IMG/VR virus record: IMGVR_UViG_3300027541_000009
Coordinates: 62,001 to 126,000 of that record
Reading direction: 5' to 3' (one strand)
Length of the DNA stretch: 64,000 nucleotides
Made by a program: the position numbers and the translations under genes. The stretch's first letter is position 1; each line of letters opens with the position of its first letter. The notes below the pieces were generated by a model. The model was given only the letters and a program-made list of their open reading frames with translations, made no database searches and was not told where the DNA came from. Of the stretch, positions 9,358 to 27,517 are shown one piece after another.

Positions 9358-9918
9358 ATGTCTGCGTTTAAAATTGTACAAAATTTACCTACTTTGAGTG
9401 TTGCAGGAACTGGAATAGTGACTTCAACTCCTATTGCACTTAAATCCGGTTATTTGCGTATTGTACCAGAACAAAATACTTATATTGAATTAGGTACAAC
9501 ACCAGTAGTTAACACCTCAACTTCAATATGGATTCCTGCAAATGGTGAATTAATCTTAAAAGAAACTGTAAGATCACAACCAACTGTAGGAATACAAACA
9601 GGAGCAACTACAACAATTACAGTACCATCTGGAACTGGATGTGCATTTGAAGTTGGTGATTATGTATCACTATCTGGAATTTCTCCCGCAGGAATTAATA
9701 CTAATTTTGCACGAGTTTCCAATATTGATCAATCTACATCATATGATAGCCCACATCAAACCAAAATGGTTTTGAGTTGGGATACATCATCACAAGGTCC
9801 TGTTACTGTACCTACAGGTGAAGTTAGAAAAGTAACCAAAGTTGCTGCCTATAATGACAGTGGTTCCTCTTCAAAAATTCATATTACAGAAGTACAAGTC
9901 GTATCTAATTTCAGCTAA
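9358..9918 (+). CDS. Hypothetical beta-rich, probably virion-associated protein
   Basis: 186 aa Thr/Val/Gly-rich ORF whose stop overlaps the gp21 start. Confidence 0.7.
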   Translation: MSAFKIVQNLPTLSVAGTGIVTSTPIALKSGYLRIVPEQNTYIELGTTPVVNTSTSIWIPANGELILKETVRSQPTVGIQTGATTTITVPSGTGCAFEVGDYVSLSGISPAGINTNFARVSNIDQSTSYDSPHQTKMVLSWDTSSQGPVTVPTGEVRKVTKVAAYNDSGSSSKIHITEVQVVSNFS

Positions 9919-10571
9919 TGAAACTAATCACAGAAGAAATTGAACAGGTAGAAGTTATCGTTGAAGAAATCAACGGTAAAAAATCTCTCTACATTGAAGG
10001 AATATTTTTACAAGGAAATATTGCAAATAGAAATAGAAGAATGTATCCAATGGACACCCTGAGAAAAGGGGTTAATTTGTATACTGAAAATTATTTAAGC
10101 AAAGGTAGAGCAGTAGGTGAACTTGGTCACCCATCTGGACCAACTATCAATTTAGATAGAGTTTCTCACAATATTATTTCACTAAAAGAAAGTGGTAATA
10201 ATTTCATAGGCAAAGCTAAAATTTTAACTTCCTTACCAATGGGTAAAATTGCAGCAGGTCTTTATGAAGAAGGTGTAAAACTTGGAGTTTCTTCTCGTGG
10301 TGTTGGTACGTTAGTCCAAACCAATGAGGGTTACAGTAAAGTAAGTGAAGATTTCATGCTTTCTACTGCTGCTGACATTGTGCACGATCCATCTGCACCT
10401 GAAGCTTTTGTAAATGGAATCATGGAAGGTGTTAGTTGGTTATATGATTCTAAAAAACAAATTTGGATTTCTGAAAATATTAAAAATAAGATTGAAAATG
10501 ATGTAGTTTCTAGAAGATTAACTGAAGAAAGAAAATTACAACATTTTGAAAATTATTTAAAACTCATATAA
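9918..10571 (+). CDS. gp21: Prohead core protease gp21
   Basis: NRNRRMYP, GELGHP, VSSRGVG and DIVHDPSAPEAFV motifs. Confidence 0.94.
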   Translation: MKLITEEIEQVEVIVEEINGKKSLYIEGIFLQGNIANRNRRMYPMDTLRKGVNLYTENYLSKGRAVGELGHPSGPTINLDRVSHNIISLKESGNNFIGKAKILTSLPMGKIAAGLYEEGVKLGVSSRGVGTLVQTNEGYSKVSEDFMLSTAADIVHDPSAPEAFVNGIMEGVSWLYDSKKQIWISENIKNKIENDVVSRRLTEERKLQHFENYLKLI

Positions 10572-10629: not shown

Positions 10630-11856
10630 ATGTCTCGTGGTAAAAACTTACAAGAAATGGAAGTAGGCACTAAGCAATCCAAAACTGCTGTCAATGCTGG
10701 TGCAAAGGCAGGAGACCCAATGGCAAAGTTAACTACAGGTATTCCTGATGGTCAAACAGCTGGATGGGAAGATTTGGGAGGTCCTACCCCAGAAAATAGT
10801 CGTCCTGATGATGATAGTAATAAATTGAAAGATCCTGCTGCAATCCTTCAGCAAGTAAGAGACGTAGTAAATCGTGGTGCTAAAGCAGCCGATCCTATGA
10901 AACATCTTGCAAAAGGTGCAGTTAAAGAAGAGGAAGAATTAGATGATGAAGATCTGATCGATGAAGACTTGGAAGACGAAGTAGTTGAAGAAGCTGCAGA
11001 GTCTGAAGATGAAGAAAAATCTTCTAAGAAAAAGTCTAAGAAAAAAGACGAAGAAGAAGATGAGGATGAAGAGGACGAGGATGAAGAAGACGAGTCCATG
11101 AAGGAGCAAATCGAAGAAATCGAGACTCAGATTGAAGAAGATGTAGAGGCACTCCTTTCAGGTGAAGAACTTTCCGAAGAATTTAAATTCAAGGCAAAGA
11201 CTGTTTTTGAAGCAGCACTAAATGCCAGAACTGAGCAAATTGAAGAAGCAATCGTACAAAAGTACGAACAGCAACTTTCAGAAGAAGTTGAAGCAATTGC
11301 TGAATCTTTAACTGAAAGAGTAGATTCCTATCTTGAGTATGTTGCTCAAGAATGGTTGGAAGAGAATGCAATTGCTCTAGAGCAAGGTCTCAGAGCAGAA
11401 ATGACAGAGAGCTTCCTCAATAATCTCAAGCAACTTTTTGAAGATCATTATGTAACTATCCCTGAAGAAAGATATGATGTACTTGAGAGCATGGTAGAAA
11501 AACTTGATGATATGGAGACTAAACTCAACGAGCAAATTGAAAGAAATATTGCTCTAAACAAAAGACTAGCAGAGTCAGTTACCGATGTAATCTTTGGTGA
11601 AGTTTCTGAGGGTCTTGCACTTTCTCAGAAAGATAAGCTTGCTTCTCTTGCGGAAAATGTTGAGTTTGATGGTGAGGAAGAATATCGTGAGAAACTAGTA
11701 ACATTGAGGGAATCTTATTTCCCATCTACTACTGGTACTCCAAGAAACACCCAAGATTATCTAGTAGAAGAAACTACTGAGACTATGCAATATCAGTCAA
11801 CCAGTAGAACTATGGATGCATACTTAAATGCACTTGGAAAGGTTTCTAGAAAGTGA
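10630..11856 (+). CDS. gp22: Prohead scaffold protein gp22
   Basis: Acidic coiled coil with LSEEFKFKAKTVFEAA and VDSYLEYVAQEW; lies between gp21 and gp23. Confidence 0.92.
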   Translation: MSRGKNLQEMEVGTKQSKTAVNAGAKAGDPMAKLTTGIPDGQTAGWEDLGGPTPENSRPDDDSNKLKDPAAILQQVRDVVNRGAKAADPMKHLAKGAVKEEEELDDEDLIDEDLEDEVVEEAAESEDEEKSSKKKSKKKDEEEDEDEEDEDEEDESMKEQIEEIETQIEEDVEALLSGEELSEEFKFKAKTVFEAALNARTEQIEEAIVQKYEQQLSEEVEAIAESLTERVDSYLEYVAQEWLEENAIALEQGLRAEMTESFLNNLKQLFEDHYVTIPEERYDVLESMVEKLDDMETKLNEQIERNIALNKRLAESVTDVIFGEVSEGLALSQKDKLASLAENVEFDGEEEYREKLVTLRESYFPSTTGTPRNTQDYLVEETTETMQYQSTSRTMDAYLNALGKVSRK

Positions 11857-11910: not shown

Positions 11911-13320
11911 ATGCAAATGTTCAATGCAGAACAGCTGCAGGAAAAGTGGGCACCACTCCTTGACTACAATGGTCTTAATGAAATCAAAGATCCACATCGT
12001 AGAGCGGTAACTGCTATCCTGTTAGAGAACCAAGAAAAAGCTCTTAGAGAAGAGAGAGAATTTCTTACAGAAGCAACCCCAACCATGAACACTGATCCCG
12101 CAGGATCAGGTGCAGCAGGTTTCAGCTACGGTGCTTCCGCAGCAGGTCCAGTAGCAGGTTTCGACCCAGTTCTGATCTCACTGATCAGACGTTCAATGCC
12201 TAACCTTGTTGCATATGACCTAGCAGGTGTTCAACCAATGAACGGTCCTGTAAGTCTCATTTTCGCAATGAGATCACGTTATACCAACCCACAAGGTAAT
12301 GAAACATTCTACAATGAAGTAGATACCACCTTCTCTGGTCAGAATGCTGGCAGAAACAATGACAATGGTTGGACTAACGGTAACGTTGGTTTCGGAACCA
12401 CTGCACAGGTTGGTTCAAACCCAGGTCTTCTCAACCCAACTTCTGCACCTCTCGGTGAGTACAATGTTGGTCAGGCAATGAGCACTTCTGAGGCAGAAAG
12501 TCTCGGTAATGATCTCAATGATGCTGGCACCTTCTTCAACGAGATGGCACTTAGCATCGAGCGTGTATCCGTTACTGCTAAGTCTCGTGCTCTGAAAGCA
12601 GAATACAGTCTTGAGCTTGCTCAGGATCTGAAGGCAATTCACGGTCTGAATGCTGAGGCTGAACTTGCAAACATTCTCTCAACTGAGATTCTTGCTGAGA
12701 TCAACCGTGAAGTTATTCGTACCATCTACATGATTGCAGAACCTGGTGCACAAAATAACGTTGCAACTCCTGGTATCTTTGACCTTGATGTTGACTCCAA
12801 CGGTCGTTGGTCAGTTGAGAAGTTCAAAGGTCTTATTTTCCAAATGGAAAGAGATGCCAACCTGATTGCACAAAGAACTCGTAGAGGTAAGGGGAACATG
12901 ATTCTCTGCTCTGCAGACGTTGCTTCAGCACTGTCTCACGCAGGAATCCTGGATTACACCCCAGCACTCAACGCAAACCTCCAGGTAGATGACACCGGTA
13001 ATACTTTTGCAGGTGTTCTCCAAGGTAAGTATAAGGTTTATATCGACCCATATTCTGCAAACAATAGCAACACCCAGTTCTATGTTGCTGGTTACAAGGG
13101 AACCTCACCTTACGATGCAGGTCTCTTCTATTGCCCATATGTTCCTCTCCAAATGGTTCGTGCCGTTGGTGAGCAGTCCTTCCAACCAAAAATTGGATTT
13201 AAGACTCGTTATGGCATGGTTGCTAACCCATTTGCTGAAGGTCTTAACCAAGGTCTTGGAAGACTCCAGAGAAACTCCAACACCTACTACAAGAGAACTC
13301 TTGTTAAGAACCTCATGTGA
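11911..13320 (+). CDS. gp23: Major capsid protein gp23
   Basis: GVQPMNGP, VTAKSRALKAEYSLELAQDLKAIHG and QPKIGFKTRYG motifs. Confidence 0.98.
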   Translation: MQMFNAEQLQEKWAPLLDYNGLNEIKDPHRRAVTAILLENQEKALREEREFLTEATPTMNTDPAGSGAAGFSYGASAAGPVAGFDPVLISLIRRSMPNLVAYDLAGVQPMNGPVSLIFAMRSRYTNPQGNETFYNEVDTTFSGQNAGRNNDNGWTNGNVGFGTTAQVGSNPGLLNPTSAPLGEYNVGQAMSTSEAESLGNDLNDAGTFFNEMALSIERVSVTAKSRALKAEYSLELAQDLKAIHGLNAEAELANILSTEILAEINREVIRTIYMIAEPGAQNNVATPGIFDLDVDSNGRWSVEKFKGLIFQMERDANLIAQRTRRGKGNMILCSADVASALSHAGILDYTPALNANLQVDDTGNTFAGVLQGKYKVYIDPYSANNSNTQFYVAGYKGTSPYDAGLFYCPYVPLQMVRAVGEQSFQPKIGFKTRYGMVANPFAEGLNQGLGRLQRNSNTYYKRTLVKNLM

Positions 13321-23464: not shown

Positions 23465-23895
23465 CTAATGTAAATGAACCCCAAGTAAATTGGACACCAT
23501 CTATGATGGTTGAAGTTACTCTAAACGAACCAGATGACTTTTTGAAAGTTAGAGAGACTCTTACTAGAATAGGAGTTGCATCTAGAAAGGAAAAGAAACT
23601 TTATCAATCCGTTCATATTCTTCATAAGCAAGGCAGATATTATCTGACACATTTTAAAGAACTATTTGCTCTAGATGGAAAATATGCAAATATTACAGTC
23701 AATGATGTTCAAAGACGTAATAGAATTGTTCAACTAGTTGCAGATTGGGGATTGATTTCTATTGTAAATCCAGATCAAGTAGTAGATATTGCTCCTCTCA
23801 ATCAAATCAAAGTTATTTCTTTTAAAGAAAAAAATGAGTGGGCACTGGAAAGTAAATATTCCATTGGCAAAAAAGTTAAACCTGAAAACGAGTAA
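23461..23895 (+). CDS. regA: Translational repressor RegA
   Basis: PDDFLKVRETLTRIGVAS and HILHKQGRYYLTHFKELF. Confidence 0.96.
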   Translation: MTNVNEPQVNWTPSMMVEVTLNEPDDFLKVRETLTRIGVASRKEKKLYQSVHILHKQGRYYLTHFKELFALDGKYANITVNDVQRRNRIVQLVADWGLISIVNPDQVVDIAPLNQIKVISFKEKNEWALESKYSIGKKVKPENE

Positions 23896-23914
23896 TCAGT
23901 GATATAACCCGAAT

Positions 23915-23946
23915 AAAATGGGAGTGCTAACCACACTCCCATTTTT
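23915..23946 (+). terminator. Intrinsic (possibly bidirectional) terminator after regA
   Basis: AAAATGGGAGTG-CTAACCA-CACTCCCATTTT. Confidence 0.8.
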
Positions 23947-24023
23947 AATGTAAGAAAATATATAATAATGAAATGAGATGCCCACTGGGATCTCATAAAC
24001 TAAGATGCTCATTGGAGGTCAAA

Positions 24024-24455
24024 ATGACAACTATCGCAAAATACAACACGTCTAACATTCAAAAGTTTTTTGAAGATATTGACAGACTAACAATTGGAAT
24101 GGATCCATTTTTTAGTAGGTTAGATAATCTTCATGTTACTAATTATCCCCCATTTAATGTTATAGATTTAGGGAATGGTCAGCAACGATTAGAAATTGCA
24201 GTTGCAGGATTTTCAAAGTCTGAAATTAGTGTCTACACTGAAAATAATGTTCTAACAGTTTCTGGAACAAAAGAAAGTAGACCTGAAGAAAACTATAAGC
24301 ATCATGGAATTGCTTCTAGATCATTCACTAGAACATGGCCAATTTCAGATGATATTAGAATTGGTGATGTAAAACTTATAGATGGTTTATTGTCTATTGA
24401 GGTATTGAGAATTATTCCAGATCATCAAAAGAAAAGAACTTATAGTGTTCTATAA
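24024..24455 (+). CDS. hsp20: Small heat-shock protein Hsp20 (IbpA-like)
   Basis: NYPPFNV, LEIAVAGF, HHGIASRSFTR and DGLL motifs; GGAGG RBS before ATG 24024. Confidence 0.93.
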   Translation: MTTIAKYNTSNIQKFFEDIDRLTIGMDPFFSRLDNLHVTNYPPFNVIDLGNGQQRLEIAVAGFSKSEISVYTENNVLTVSGTKESRPEENYKHHGIASRSFTRTWPISDDIRIGDVKLIDGLLSIEVLRIIPDHQKKRTYSVL

Positions 24456-24458
24456 ATA
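24451..24458 (+). promoter_or_regulatory. T4-type late promoter
   Basis: TATAAATA overlapping the hsp20 stop, 10 nt before a small ORF. Confidence 0.75.
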
Positions 24459-24468
24459 AAAATAAAAA

Positions 24469-24624
24469 ATGAAAACCTTTCAGGAATTTAAAAAAATTAT
24501 AAATGAAATGGTAGGTGATTTTGGTTCTGGTGTAAGACCACCAAAACCCAAATGTTATGGGAAAACGACTACTTATGCCATGCTTCCCGGAAAAAGAGTA
24601 TGTAAGTTCAAAAGAAAAAGATAA
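24469..24624 (+). CDS. 51 aa basic microprotein with a T4 capsid-targeting-like N-terminus (MKTFQEFKKIINE), absent from the ORF track
   Basis: Translated by hand: MKTFQEFKKIINEMVGDFGSGVRPPKPKCYGKTTTYAMLPGKRVCKFKRKR; has its own late promoter and terminator. Confidence 0.7.
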   Translation: MKTFQEFKKIINEMVGDFGSGVRPPKPKCYGKTTTYAMLPGKRVCKFKRKR

Positions 24625-24649
24625 ATACTTTTGAATATCGTCGGCGCAA

Positions 24650-24692
24650 GAGGAGTACCTGGCAAAATCCAGGTTGACTCCTCCTTTTTTTT
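24650..24692 (+). terminator. Composite intrinsic terminator
   Basis: GAGGAGT/ACTCCTC stem enclosing a CCTGG/CCAGG hairpin, followed by T8. Confidence 0.75.
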
Positions 24693-24734
24693 GTGATATC
24701 ATTGTTGGATACCAAATGTGAATGGAAAAATAAA

Positions 24735-25025
24735 ATGATACAAGGACTATTACTTACAACTAACCAAATCTTAGTAACGGAAGTACATGAAGTGATGGTT
24801 GATTTGGGTGAACCTAATTGTAGGATGGTTAATCCTTGCACAATTAATAGTGATGGTGATCTTGTAAGGTACTTGTCTGATCACACAAATCAGACTACAT
24901 TTATGATTTCATCTGATAAAATTTTAACTATCTTTGATCCACTTACTGATATAAAGGATCAATATAGAATTTTGACTGGATATGTAGAAGAGGTTTCAAC
25001 TAGTGAGGAGGAGGAACTGAATTGA
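24735..25025 (+). CDS. Conserved hypothetical protein upstream of DNA polymerase
   Basis: Start set at MIQGLLL; LGEPNCRMVNP motif; overlaps the gp43 start. Confidence 0.7.
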   Translation: MIQGLLLTTNQILVTEVHEVMVDLGEPNCRMVNPCTINSDGDLVRYLSDHTNQTTFMISSDKILTIFDPLTDIKDQYRILTGYVEEVSTSEEEELN

Positions 25026-27517
25026 GATTTTACACTAATGTAACTCAAAAATTCGATAAAATGTTGGTTCGTGGATATGAAGATGGTGAAAGGTTTAACC
25101 AGGAACTTGAATTTTATCCTACATTATATGTTTTAAGTAAAAAAGAGACAGAACATAAGACACTTGATGGTCAATTTGTAAAACCAATTCAACCTGGATT
25201 GATTTCTGATTGTAGAGAATTTTATAAAAAATATAATGAAGTAGATGGATTTTCCATTTATGGGATGGATAACTATACCTTCCAATATATCTCAGATAAT
25301 TATTCTGAGGATGAAATTAAATATGATATTTCTAAAATTAAATTATTTACAATTGACATTGAGGTTGCATCTGAAAATGGATTCCCCAATGTTTTTGATT
25401 GCTCAGAAGAACTTCTTTTGATTACAATTCAAGATTATAATACCAAGGAAATTATTACTTTCGGGTCTAGGGATTATTCTGGAAATAGAAAAGACTTCAC
25501 ATTTATAAAATGTGAAGATGAAGTTGATCTATTTAATAAATTCTTGGAATTTTGGGAAACTTCATCTCCTGATGTAGTAACTGGATGGAATAATTCACTG
25601 TATGATATTCCATATATTGTGGGTAGGATTGATAGAGTACTTGGTTCCAAAGAGGTTAAAAGACTTTCTCCTTGGAAAAATGTAAGAATTAGAGAAGTAG
25701 AAATTTCTGGAAGGACAAATCTTATTTGTGATATTTCTGGAATTACTATATTGGATTATCTCAATCTCTATAAAAAGTTTACTTATACTAATAGGGAAAG
25801 TTATGCACTTAATCACATTGGTGAAGTAGAATTAGGTCAGAAAAAACTGGACCACTCAGAGTTTGATACGTTTAAAGAATTTTATACAAAAAATTGGAAT
25901 AAGTTTGTTGATTATAATATTCTAGACGTAGAACTTGTAGATAAACTTGAGGAGAAATTAAAATTAATTGAACTTTGTATTATGATGGCATATAATGCAA
26001 AGATTAACTTCGATGACGTTTTTTATCAAGTTAGGATGTGGGATGCAATTACTTACAATTATTTGAGAAAAAAGAATATTGCAATTCCACCTAAAGTTGC
26101 TTCAGATAAGGATGAAAAATTTGAGGGTGCTTATGTAAAAGAACCTAAACCTGGAATGTACGATTGGGTTGTGAGTTTTGACCTTGCTTCCCTATATCCA
26201 AGTCTAATCATGATGTATAATATTAGTCCAGAAACAATTTTGGATAATAAACATCCTAACATTAACATTCAAAAAGTTCTTAATAAAACTGTAGATACTG
26301 AAAGTTATTCTGAGTATGCTATATGTCCAAATGGATGTATGTACAGAAAAGATATACGTGGATTCTTTCCTGAACTTATTGAAAAAATGTTCAATGATAG
26401 AAAACTCTACAAGAAAAAAATGCTTGAGGCTCAGATAAAGTATGAAAAAGAACCATCTAAAAAGTTAAGCAACTTAATTTCTGAATATAATAATATCCAA
26501 CAGAACTTGAAGATTTGTTTGAATAGTCTTTATGGTGCCCTTGGAAATCAATACTTTAGATATTACCGATTAGACAATGCAAAGGCAGTTACCTTTTCTG
26601 GGCAAACTGTAATTAAGTGGATTGAGAGTAAATTAAATACATATCTCAATAAAATTATTGGTACTAAAAATCAAGACTTTATTATTGCATTGGATACTGA
26701 TTCTAACTATTTAAATTTGGGACCTCTTATTAAAAAAGTTTTTAAAGATAAGCAAGTATCAAAAGAAAAAATTATTAGTTTCATCGATACTATTTGTGAA
26801 GATAAATTCCAAGAGTTTATTAATACATCGTTCCAGGAACTTTCTGATTACACCAATGCATATAAAAATACTCTTTATATGAAAAGAGAGGCAATTTGCG
26901 ATAGGGCTATCTGGACCAAAAAGAAAAGATATATCCTCAATGTATGGGATAATGAAGGAGTTAGGTATGAGGAACCTAAGATTAAAATCAAGGGTCTAGA
27001 AGCAATTAAATCATCTACCCCTGCAGTATGCAGAAAAATGATTAAAGATGCAGTTCCAATTATGATGAATCAATCTGAAGATGATATGATCCGTTACATC
27101 AAAGAATGTAAGGAAAAATTTATGAAATTTTCAGTTGAAGAGATTTCATTTCCAAGATCTGTTAATAACTTAGATGTTTATGGATCTAGAGGTGAAATTT
27201 ACAAAAAAGGAACTCCGATGCATGTTAGGGGAGCACTTCTTTATAATTACTATGTAAGGAAGAATAAAATAGATCATAAATATCCAATTATCCAAAATGG
27301 AGAAAAAATAAAGTACTGTGCACTTAAAGTTCCAAATCCTATTAGGGAAGATGTAATTTGTTTTATCCAGAACTTTCCGAAGGAACTTGATTTGGATAAG
27401 TACGTAGACTATACTACACAGTTCAATAAATCTTTTCTGGAGCCTCTTAAAATTATTCTAGATGCTATTGGGTGGAAAACAGAGAAGACAGTAAACTTAG
27501 CAAACTTTTACGCATAA
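25022..27517 (+). CDS. gp43: Family B DNA polymerase gp43
   Basis: Exonuclease DIE and GWN motifs; SFDLASLYPS, KICLNSLYG and DTDS polymerase motifs; no intein. Confidence 0.98.
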   Translation: MRFYTNVTQKFDKMLVRGYEDGERFNQELEFYPTLYVLSKKETEHKTLDGQFVKPIQPGLISDCREFYKKYNEVDGFSIYGMDNYTFQYISDNYSEDEIKYDISKIKLFTIDIEVASENGFPNVFDCSEELLLITIQDYNTKEIITFGSRDYSGNRKDFTFIKCEDEVDLFNKFLEFWETSSPDVVTGWNNSLYDIPYIVGRIDRVLGSKEVKRLSPWKNVRIREVEISGRTNLICDISGITILDYLNLYKKFTYTNRESYALNHIGEVELGQKKLDHSEFDTFKEFYTKNWNKFVDYNILDVELVDKLEEKLKLIELCIMMAYNAKINFDDVFYQVRMWDAITYNYLRKKNIAIPPKVASDKDEKFEGAYVKEPKPGMYDWVVSFDLASLYPSLIMMYNISPETILDNKHPNINIQKVLNKTVDTESYSEYAICPNGCMYRKDIRGFFPELIEKMFNDRKLYKKKMLEAQIKYEKEPSKKLSNLISEYNNIQQNLKICLNSLYGALGNQYFRYYRLDNAKAVTFSGQTVIKWIESKLNTYLNKIIGTKNQDFIIALDTDSNYLNLGPLIKKVFKDKQVSKEKIISFIDTICEDKFQEFINTSFQELSDYTNAYKNTLYMKREAICDRAIWTKKKRYILNVWDNEGVRYEEPKIKIKGLEAIKSSTPAVCRKMIKDAVPIMMNQSEDDMIRYIKECKEKFMKFSVEEISFPRSVNNLDVYGSRGEIYKKGTPMHVRGALLYNYYVRKNKIDHKYPIIQNGEKIKYCALKVPNPIREDVICFIQNFPKELDLDKYVDYTTQFNKSFLEPLKIILDAIGWKTEKTVNLANFYA

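Follow-up and report, generated by a model that had tools for sequence, protein, structure and literature searches.

We analysed a 64,000-nucleotide (nt) stretch of DNA, the window, which covers bases 62001-126000 of the IMG/VR virus record IMGVR_UViG_3300027541_000009, and in it a 51-codon open reading frame (ORF), here called ORF51, that lies between the small heat-shock protein gene hsp20 and a conserved hairpin element. The source record is 284,050 bp long and complete according to CheckV, has a G+C content of 35% and encodes both psbA and psbD. Its gene layout is T4-like: the portal gene, gp21, gp22 and gp23 occupy 7.4-13.3 kb of the window, and gp45, gp44, gp62, regA, hsp20, ORF51, the DUF6561 gene, gp43 and uvsX follow further along. 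This layout, together with psbA and psbD, identifies the phage as a large cyanomyovirus. The closest isolate at the locus is the freshwater Synechococcus phage S-SRM01 (68% DNA identity by blastn), and the RNA libraries in which the phage was found are riverine.

The features of the locus, and those elsewhere in the window that bear on it, are collected in Table 1. The product of ORF51 starts with a 13-residue leader, MKTFQEFKKIINE, that resembles the capsid-targeting sequence (CTS) of T4. A cut after Glu13 would leave 38 residues, among them 11 Lys or Arg, one Asp and two Cys, with a net charge of +10. The preliminary description of this stretch had reported a self-contained unit of promoter, 51-residue ORF and terminator, and had read the product as an injected internal protein. 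The promoter motif TATAAATA, the ORF and a terminator-like hairpin with its T-run all lie where it had placed them, and both the quoted start of the product and the Lys/Arg-rich remainder of 38 residues with two Cys were confirmed.

Table 1. Positions of the features discussed, numbered from the first base of the window.
Feature	Position	Strand	Basis or remark
gp21 prohead protease	9918-10571	+	PF03420, 1.6e-34
gp22 scaffold	10630-11856	+	ORF list
gp23 major capsid protein	11911-13320	+	FLTE↓A at residues 51-55
regA terminator, GGGAGTG...CACTCCC and T-run	23920-23946	+	sequence
TATAAT -10 box	23961-23966	+	sequence; behind the regA terminator
hsp20 small heat-shock protein	24024-24455	+	likely true start ATG 24024 behind GGAGG; stop 24453-24455
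T4-type late promoter motif TATAAATA	24451-24458	+	overlaps the hsp20 stop; ends 10 nt before the ATG of ORF51
51-codon ORF (ORF51)	24469-24624	+	ATG 24469, stop 24622-24624; product starts MKTFQEFKKIINE
Leader, codons 1-13 (MKTFQEFKKIINE)	24469-24507	+	CTS-like; ends in an I-N-E cleavage motif
Predicted mature peptide (38 residues) and stop codon	24508-24624	+	GD.G box, Cys29...Cys45 loop, net charge +10
Second late-type motif GATAAATA	24620-24627	+	includes the ORF51 stop codon
Invariant single-stranded box GAATATCGTCGGCGC	24633-24647	+	conserved across copies
Bipartite hairpin	24650-24683	+	outer stem GAGGAGT/ACTCCTC, inner stem CCTGG/CCAGG, loop CAAAAT
Sigma-70-type promoter, TTGACT, 17 nt, TG-TATCAT	24674-24702	+	overlaps the 3' arm of the hairpin; 10 of 12 consensus matches
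T-run, eight T	24685-24692	+	sequence
DUF6561 gene	24736-25025	+	downstream of the sigma-70-type promoter
gp43	25022-27517	+	downstream of the sigma-70-type promoter, after the DUF6561 gene
Cyanophage core 'cytidyltransferase' (T4-GC190), 399 residues	31495-32694	+	MKSFRQFISE↓A; phrog_395, 1.5e-74
Looser leader-bearing ORF, 126 residues	46022-46402	+	MNYQEFKDLSE↓A; AATAAATA 25 nt upstream; weak PHROG hits

ORF51 is a real conserved gene under purifying selection. A word search found 19 homologous metagenomic proteins of 44-52 residues and 63-98% identity, which had been called independently in JGI, ENA, NCBI and Logan assemblies, and the S-SRM01 orthologue is 53% identical (tblastn). The order gp62, regA, hsp20, ORF, DUF6561, gp43 was constant in every contig examined. 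Frame and length are kept, and 18 columns are invariant, across 16 sequences down to 63% identity. Among five distinct 51-codon genes, the ratio of nonsynonymous to synonymous substitution rates (dN/dS) was 0.146 over the whole ORF at a dS of about 1, 0.093 in the predicted mature part and 0.255 in the leader. In S-SRM01, the coding sequence QPX48211.1 (at the MW015081 157606-157785 locus) is annotated from an internal ATG that omits the conserved leader, the homologous start lying 21 nt upstream of the annotated one. The minus-strand 'hypothetical protein' SXEG_00112 of S-RIM8 A.HR3, which runs across the conserved element, is probably spurious, as is a 96-codon antisense frame over ORF51 and the element in the window (24412-24702, minus strand).

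In the predicted mature part the GD.G box is invariant, and Cys29 and Cys45 bracket a loop. An exhaustive profile search of the whole library retrieved only 13 representative clusters, all small, each of which either begins with the leader or was called from an internal Met just behind it. The distant relatives among them keep a GD[FY]G box and the loop C-Y-G-K-T-x-x-Y-x-M-x-P-x-K-K-V-C, and the same search connected the family to no known one. Sequence searches of Pfam, PHROGs, the ESM Atlas and the PDB returned nothing informative for the mature peptide. AlphaFold2, given the 16-row alignment, reached a mean predicted local distance difference test score (pLDDT) of 63 and placed only the leader helix (residues 4-18, at low confidence) and a weak hairpin, a quality insufficient for a structural search. 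A co-fold of gp21 with the ORF51 product scored 0.02, which weighs neither for nor against an interaction.

The leader, MKTFQEF..IINE, is aromatic at positions 4 and 7 and ends in [I/L]-x-Glu. Across the homologues F7 and E13 are invariant, K2 and F4 are conserved in at least 90%, and P3, two residues ahead of E13, is Ile or Leu in almost every ORF51-type member; positions 5, 8, 9 and 12 are free to vary. In the T4 CTS, residues 4 and 7 are the main determinants of head targeting, residues 8 and 10 those of processing, and loss of processing leaves targeting intact (PMC9026906). The positions conserved in the ORF51 leader are those that this mutational work assigns to targeting and processing. 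Codons at the conserved residues differ among members (ACC, ACG, TCA or TCC for Thr/Ser; GAA or GAG), and therefore the constraint acts on the protein. The T4 leaders quoted in the preliminary description proved correct when checked in NC_000866 (MKTYQEFIAE↓A in IPII and IPIII, MKTFKEF in IPI), and its wording of a near-textbook T4 CTS is borne out at the level of sequence by the two aromatic residues and the terminal [I/L]-x-E.

The whole 284-kb genome was scanned with the strict pattern M-x-T-[FYW]-x-[EQD]-[FYW], alongside reversed and shuffled controls. This pattern opens exactly three ORFs, namely ORF51, an 82-residue ORF and a very basic 202-residue ORF, and all three continue with I-x-E; the reversed genome gave 0 matches and the shuffled genomes a mean of 0.6, so that three exceeds what chance would give. 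A looser pattern adds two ORFs in the window, the T4-GC190 gene and the 126-residue ORF of Table 1, which brings the genome to five leader-bearing ORFs. A NATAAATA-type motif lies 10-25 nt upstream of four of the five; the forward strand of the 284 kb has only 75 such motifs. A degenerate search of T4 for M-x-x-[FY]-x-[EQ]-F located MKT[FY][KQ]EF at ipI, ipII, ipIII and 61.1 only. About ten leader-bearing ORFs were counted in S-SRM01 against one expected, and one or two in the marine phages examined. The 82- and 202-residue ORFs are adjacent and lie outside the window (genome positions 224917-225165 and 225641-226249), with the leaders MLTFREFYEICE↓A and MKTFQEFMSICE↓E, respectively. Both look like classical internal proteins and neither has a PHROG or Pfam match; the larger is a low-complexity sequence, with CTAAATA 24 nt before its start.

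A leader of this kind opens the core cyanophage 'cytidyltransferase' T4-GC190, and is kept in its orthologues in S-SM2, S-SM1, Syn9 and S-SRM01 (for example MKKFSAFLNE↓A in S-SM1, SSM1_190, and MKKFSAFLSE↓A in Syn9 gp184). GC190 was detected in purified S-SM1 particles, as marked with the proteomic data in File S1 of Sullivan et al. 2010 (PMC3037559). This detection is the only experimental anchor of the leader, and an indirect one. Homologues of GC190 beyond this cyanophage group start at about residue 96 of the window protein; the outside proteins lack the first 95 or so residues, and therefore the leader-bearing N-terminal extension is an addition. In S-SCSM1 the GC190 protein is annotated as a nicotinamide-mononucleotide adenylyltransferase. 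T4-GC119 was considered as a second virion-proven leader family and was not counted, the leader being present in the P-SSM7 member and missing from the S-SM1 member; the Syn9 member has only a loose internal look-alike.

The machinery that would act on such a leader is encoded in the same window. Among the head-assembly genes, gp21 matches PF03420 (1.6e-34), and PF07068 was matched at 2.2e-144. The gp23 of the window carries FLTE↓A, and T4 gp23 has the identical FLTE↓A at residues 62-66. T4 gp23 is cleaved within it, at Glu65↓Ala66. The gp21 of this phage would thus be expected to cut gp23 at its FLTE↓A site.

The regA terminator and the TATAAT box behind it are likely to mark the start of an hsp20-ORF51 transcription unit, and the regA-hsp20 spacer repeats the layout found after the ORF, a terminator followed by a promoter. 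The homologous hsp20 gene matched PF00011 in every related contig. ORF51 is covered in four riverine RNA libraries by contigs that match the window exactly. In each library a single contig runs from 23941 or 23985 to 24640-24686 and so takes in hsp20 and ORF51 as far as the T-run; the contig before it stops at the regA terminator, with breaks between 23874/23911 and 23941/24066 in all four libraries, and the next contigs begin at 24662-24784. The breaks coincide with the predicted signals in all four runs, although such contigs give no timing, start or strand and cannot prove transcript ends. Since the two genes share RNA contigs and lie behind an upstream terminator and TATAAT box, ORF51 is most likely expressed together with hsp20. 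A second, late expression from TATAAATA may perhaps occur. In related contigs the homologous ORF is preceded, at a distance of 9, 13, 19 or 33 nt, by a late-type motif whose sites cannot be aligned with one another, the 33-nt copies lying inside hsp20 at a non-homologous place, and its retention in every lineage at non-homologous positions speaks for selection maintaining a late promoter. Over window positions 24449-24692, three of the RNA runs also yielded a short contig of a related phage whose hsp20 directly adjoins the element. Its mean word depth was about 1200, 890 and 145, compared with about 13, 7 and 17 for the contigs of the window, which could reflect a very abundant RNA or words common to many strains.

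The sequence downstream of ORF51 (24620-24703) is a conserved element in its own right. About 50 isolate genomes contain it at about 80% DNA identity (blastn of about 100 nt), and it was also found in over 120 IMG/VR contigs, whether the ORF is present or not. It is single-copy in the genome: the window has one exact copy of the box, and each isolate record has the element at one place. The arrangement of TAAATA followed by the box was seen in the 113 distinct IMG/VR and isolate sequences examined. The TAAATA always contains the stop codon of whichever gene precedes, and a spacer of 7-8 nt leads to the invariant, single-stranded GAATATCGTCGnCGC, a G-rich outer stem that covaries, an inner stem with the loop CA[A/C]AAT, and the T-run. 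A TAnAAT box stands 17 nt after a TTGAC located in the 3' arm, and both are kept in most copies. The hairpin has an RNAfold energy of -19.8 kcal/mol, and over 57 arm combinations of the outer stem the arms of the same copy averaged -20.1 kcal/mol and swapped arms -16.0; the structure rests on RNAfold and this covariation. A simple terminator scanner made no call in the region, presumably because of the bulge and the nested stem. Many IMG/VR copies have one of two mini-hairpin inserts (CGTC..GACG or GGC..GCC) between the box and the outer stem, neither of which is present in the window.

The element forms the border that separates the hsp20 unit from the DUF6561-gp43 unit; in P-SSM7 and Syn19 its place has shifted to the psbA region, along with DUF6561-type genes (GC174-175 in P-SSM7). 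Its layout is that of either a late small RNA some 60 nt in length or a border of terminator and promoter retained to allow recombination. An Rfam scan of 23800-25300 with E values up to 10 returned no family for it, and the glutamine riboswitch and Downstream-peptide motifs, which were considered as candidates, did not match. A trans-acting small RNA with a target on the phage was also considered: the best duplex of the 19-nt stretch 24630-24648, which includes the box, in a scan of the whole genome had -20.4 kcal/mol and shuffled sequences gave -20.4 to -24.0, and therefore a target inside the phage has no support. The unit described at first as self-contained is not one: the hairpin and T-run belong to an independent element that directly follows hsp20 in phages without the ORF, and the RNA contigs span hsp20 through ORF51 to the T-run.

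The space between hsp20 and the hairpin is polymorphic. We collected 113 distinct copies of the element from IMG/VR and classed them by the gene immediately upstream. This was hsp20 itself in 52 copies, a small ORF starting MK[ST]F.[QED]F in 22, a small GC162-type ORF without a leader in 3, and something other or unclear in 36. In different phages the space is occupied by unrelated ORFs of 45-87 residues, nearly all leader-bearing. Among the 22 ORFs with the leader, at least five mutually unalignable types of cargo can be told apart: the ORF51 type, which has the tail KFKRKR, the S-SRM01 type, and another three or four whose acidic tails are rich in Gly and Asp. The same CTCTAAATAAAAATAAAAA-ATG arrangement precedes nearly all of these ORFs. 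A fixed leader, variable cargo and conserved flanks are also the description given of T-even internal-protein genes (PMC9026906).

What does the product of ORF51 do? Because it begins with the same short leader as the head-loaded proteins of T4, we read it as the precursor of a head peptide, and consider it reasonably probable that it is loaded into the prohead via its leader, cut by gp21 after Glu13, and left as a 38-residue peptide of charge +10 with the DNA. The gene would be transcribed with hsp20 from the upstream sigma-70-type promoter and probably again late, from TATAAATA at its start. Its N-terminal helix of 13 residues, with aromatics at 4 and 7, would bring the protein into the scaffold core of the assembling prohead, as the CTS does in T4. 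The prohead protease gp21 would then cleave after Glu13 (I-N-E↓M), and the resulting peptide, with its Cys-bracketed loop, would remain with the packaged DNA and enter the host cell with it. Head targeting, the cut by gp21, retention in the head and delivery are all deduced from sequence. That the mature peptide binds DNA or neutralises charge is a guess from its net charge, and it is likewise a guess that it is a host-directed, counter-defence effector, of which the replacement of cargo between strains is what would be expected. The interpretation offered in the preliminary description is therefore upheld in part: the gene is conserved, its leader is CTS-like and gp21, gp22 and gp23 lie in the window, but the unit is not self-contained.

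Several observations weigh against this head-peptide reading. PHROG, Pfam and profile comparisons detected no similarity between the mature part and any T4 internal protein. At the locus, several types of cargo lack the canonical [L/I]-x-E, the S-SRM01 orthologue (QFME↓K) among them. The late motif does exist, as first described, but at 10 nt from the ATG it is an outlier in the genome, about 30 other motifs lying at 19-39 nt, and a start about 6 nt downstream of it would give an untranslated leader of 5 nt without a Shine-Dalgarno sequence. The gene lies within the replication module and shares its RNA-library contig with hsp20, so that it need not be a purely late gene, and the RNA libraries themselves may contain carried-over DNA. 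In addition, the S-SM1 member of the virion-detected cluster GC119 has no leader, and a 'cytidylyltransferase' of 286 residues has been reported from virions of S-CREM2. In S-CRM01, a cluster C relative of S-CREM2, the match begins at residue 97 of the window GC190 protein, and by analogy the S-CREM2 enzyme probably lacks the leader-bearing extension. From these two cases the leader is not the sole route into the particle.

A rival reading is a product that is never packaged. ORF51 could encode a small basic protein of the infected cell, either an accessory factor that binds nucleic acids in replication or gene expression or a protein that works with Hsp20, the leader helix being a module shared for structural or recombinational reasons and not a signal for targeting. 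A position between regA/hsp20 and gp43 in the replication module, RNA contigs held in common with hsp20 downstream of a sigma-70-type -10 box, and the lack of the cleavage motif in several cargo types would all fit such a protein. So would the T4 look-alike 61.1, which adjoins the primase gene and has no known head role, and the conserved flanks could persist mainly as recombination sites for cassette exchange. What weighs against an intracellular role is that the conserved leader positions are exactly those required for head targeting and processing in T4, that the same leader is found on a virion-detected protein, that the pattern is in T4 almost exclusive to internal proteins, and that a late-type motif lies upstream in every lineage at non-homologous positions. 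We regard this explanation as doubtful, though it is the most serious of the alternatives.

A product that does enter the prohead might serve assembly only, as a minor core component like T4 gp67 or gp68, and afterwards be degraded or remain as inert filler. Small charged peptides do stay in T4 heads after core processing. Homologues of gp67 and gp68 are not among the cyanophage genes in the parts of the comparative tables consulted, and hsp20, with which ORF51 is most likely co-transcribed, was suggested by Sullivan et al. to have a role in capsid maturation (PMC3037559). An essential assembly factor, however, would not be missing in roughly half of the related phages, as it is where hsp20 abuts the element, nor would it be swapped for unrelated cargos, and the strong purifying selection on the 38 mature residues argues for a function of the cut product itself. 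We consider a purely structural part improbable. As for a chance open frame in an AT-rich regulatory spacer, ORF51 is short, lacks a Shine-Dalgarno sequence and is overlapped by the 96-codon antisense frame, but the frame, length and invariant columns shared by the 16 aligned sequences, a dN/dS of 0.15 at a dS of about 1 and the independent gene calls at JGI, ENA and NCBI give this next to no probability, and the conservation pattern already refutes it.

A broader proposal, which goes beyond ORF51 and which we put forward as speculative and rather unlikely as a whole, is that the interval between hsp20 and the element is a cassette site of cyanomyoviruses for injected peptides, that its cargos are effectors of counter-defence or host takeover, and that its right flank encodes an abundant late small RNA of about 60 nt. 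A fixed left flank, made up of the late motif and leader codons, and a fixed right flank, the element, would permit cargo to be swapped by recombination. The small RNA of the right flank would consist of the late motif, the invariant single-stranded box of 15 nt and the terminator hairpin.

Should the leader function as in T4, it would provide a simple sequence rule for listing the cargo that enters the cell with the DNA of cyanomyoviruses. Such a list would include microproteins that are invisible to tryptic virion proteomics, as well as the enzyme-like core protein GC190, whose leader and detection in virions raise the possibility of an injected enzyme of nucleotide metabolism. Coliphages and cyanophages would then share a conserved head-targeting signal, which could be used to load cyanophage heads with foreign proteins, as T4 heads have been. 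The polymorphic locus would be of interest for counter-defence activity in marine and freshwater Synechococcus phages.

How do these features compare with known systems? The element resembles the PeSL cassettes of T4-type phages, which reportedly (Arbiol et al. 2010) consist of a stem-loop and an early promoter, in that its terminator-like stem-loop overlaps a sigma-70 promoter and flanks a locus of gene exchange. It differs from them in being single-copy, with no copies dispersed over the genome, and to our knowledge neither an invariant single-stranded box of 15 nt nor a late-type motif of its own is a part of PeSL. GC190 shares with ORF51 the leader, MK[SKN]F..F[IL].E↓A, but is an enzyme-like core cyanophage protein of 380-440 residues and no polymorphic microprotein. 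The T4 protein 61.1 (54 residues, phrog_1823; NC_000866 18966-19130, minus strand) is similar in size, starts MKTFKEFIKE, has a Gly-rich stretch after the leader and likewise has replication genes as neighbours; its tail, in contrast, is acidic and lacks the Cys loop. Apart from ipI, ipII and ipIII it is the only T4 ORF with the full CTS pattern, and we found no discussion of its leader in the searchable literature. Homology of ORF51 to gp61.1 beyond the leader was considered and rejected, as hhalign covers residues 1-9 only (probability 69%) and a PHROG hmmscan was empty.

The mechanism proposed here is the known one of T4. Its signal in cyanomyoviruses, on microproteins and on GC190, and the proposed cassette site are absent from the searchable literature, in which we found no description of a CTS or of internal proteins in cyanophages; subscription journals were outside this coverage, and priority elsewhere is not excludable. 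The closest parallel is with the T4 internal proteins IPI, IPII and IPIII. Basic CTS-like proteins were described in T-even phages by Repoila et al. 1994, as cited in PMC9026906. The mature part of ORF51 is shorter than that of the T4 proteins (38 versus 76-185 residues) and has no sequence similarity to them, and ORF51 matched neither of the internal-protein families phrog_4363 and phrog_7857. It also differs in belonging to a cyanomyovirus and in its leader of 13 residues with the putative site I-N-E↓M. Homology of the cargo is not required in T4 either, where IPI and IPIII are mutually unrelated. Like ORF51, the T4 proteins start M-K-T-[F/Y]-x-E-F, end their leader in [I/L]-x-E, the gp21 site in T4, and carry a basic cargo. 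Like the cyanophage locus, they place several unrelated cargos under one leader, at a locus that differs between related phages.

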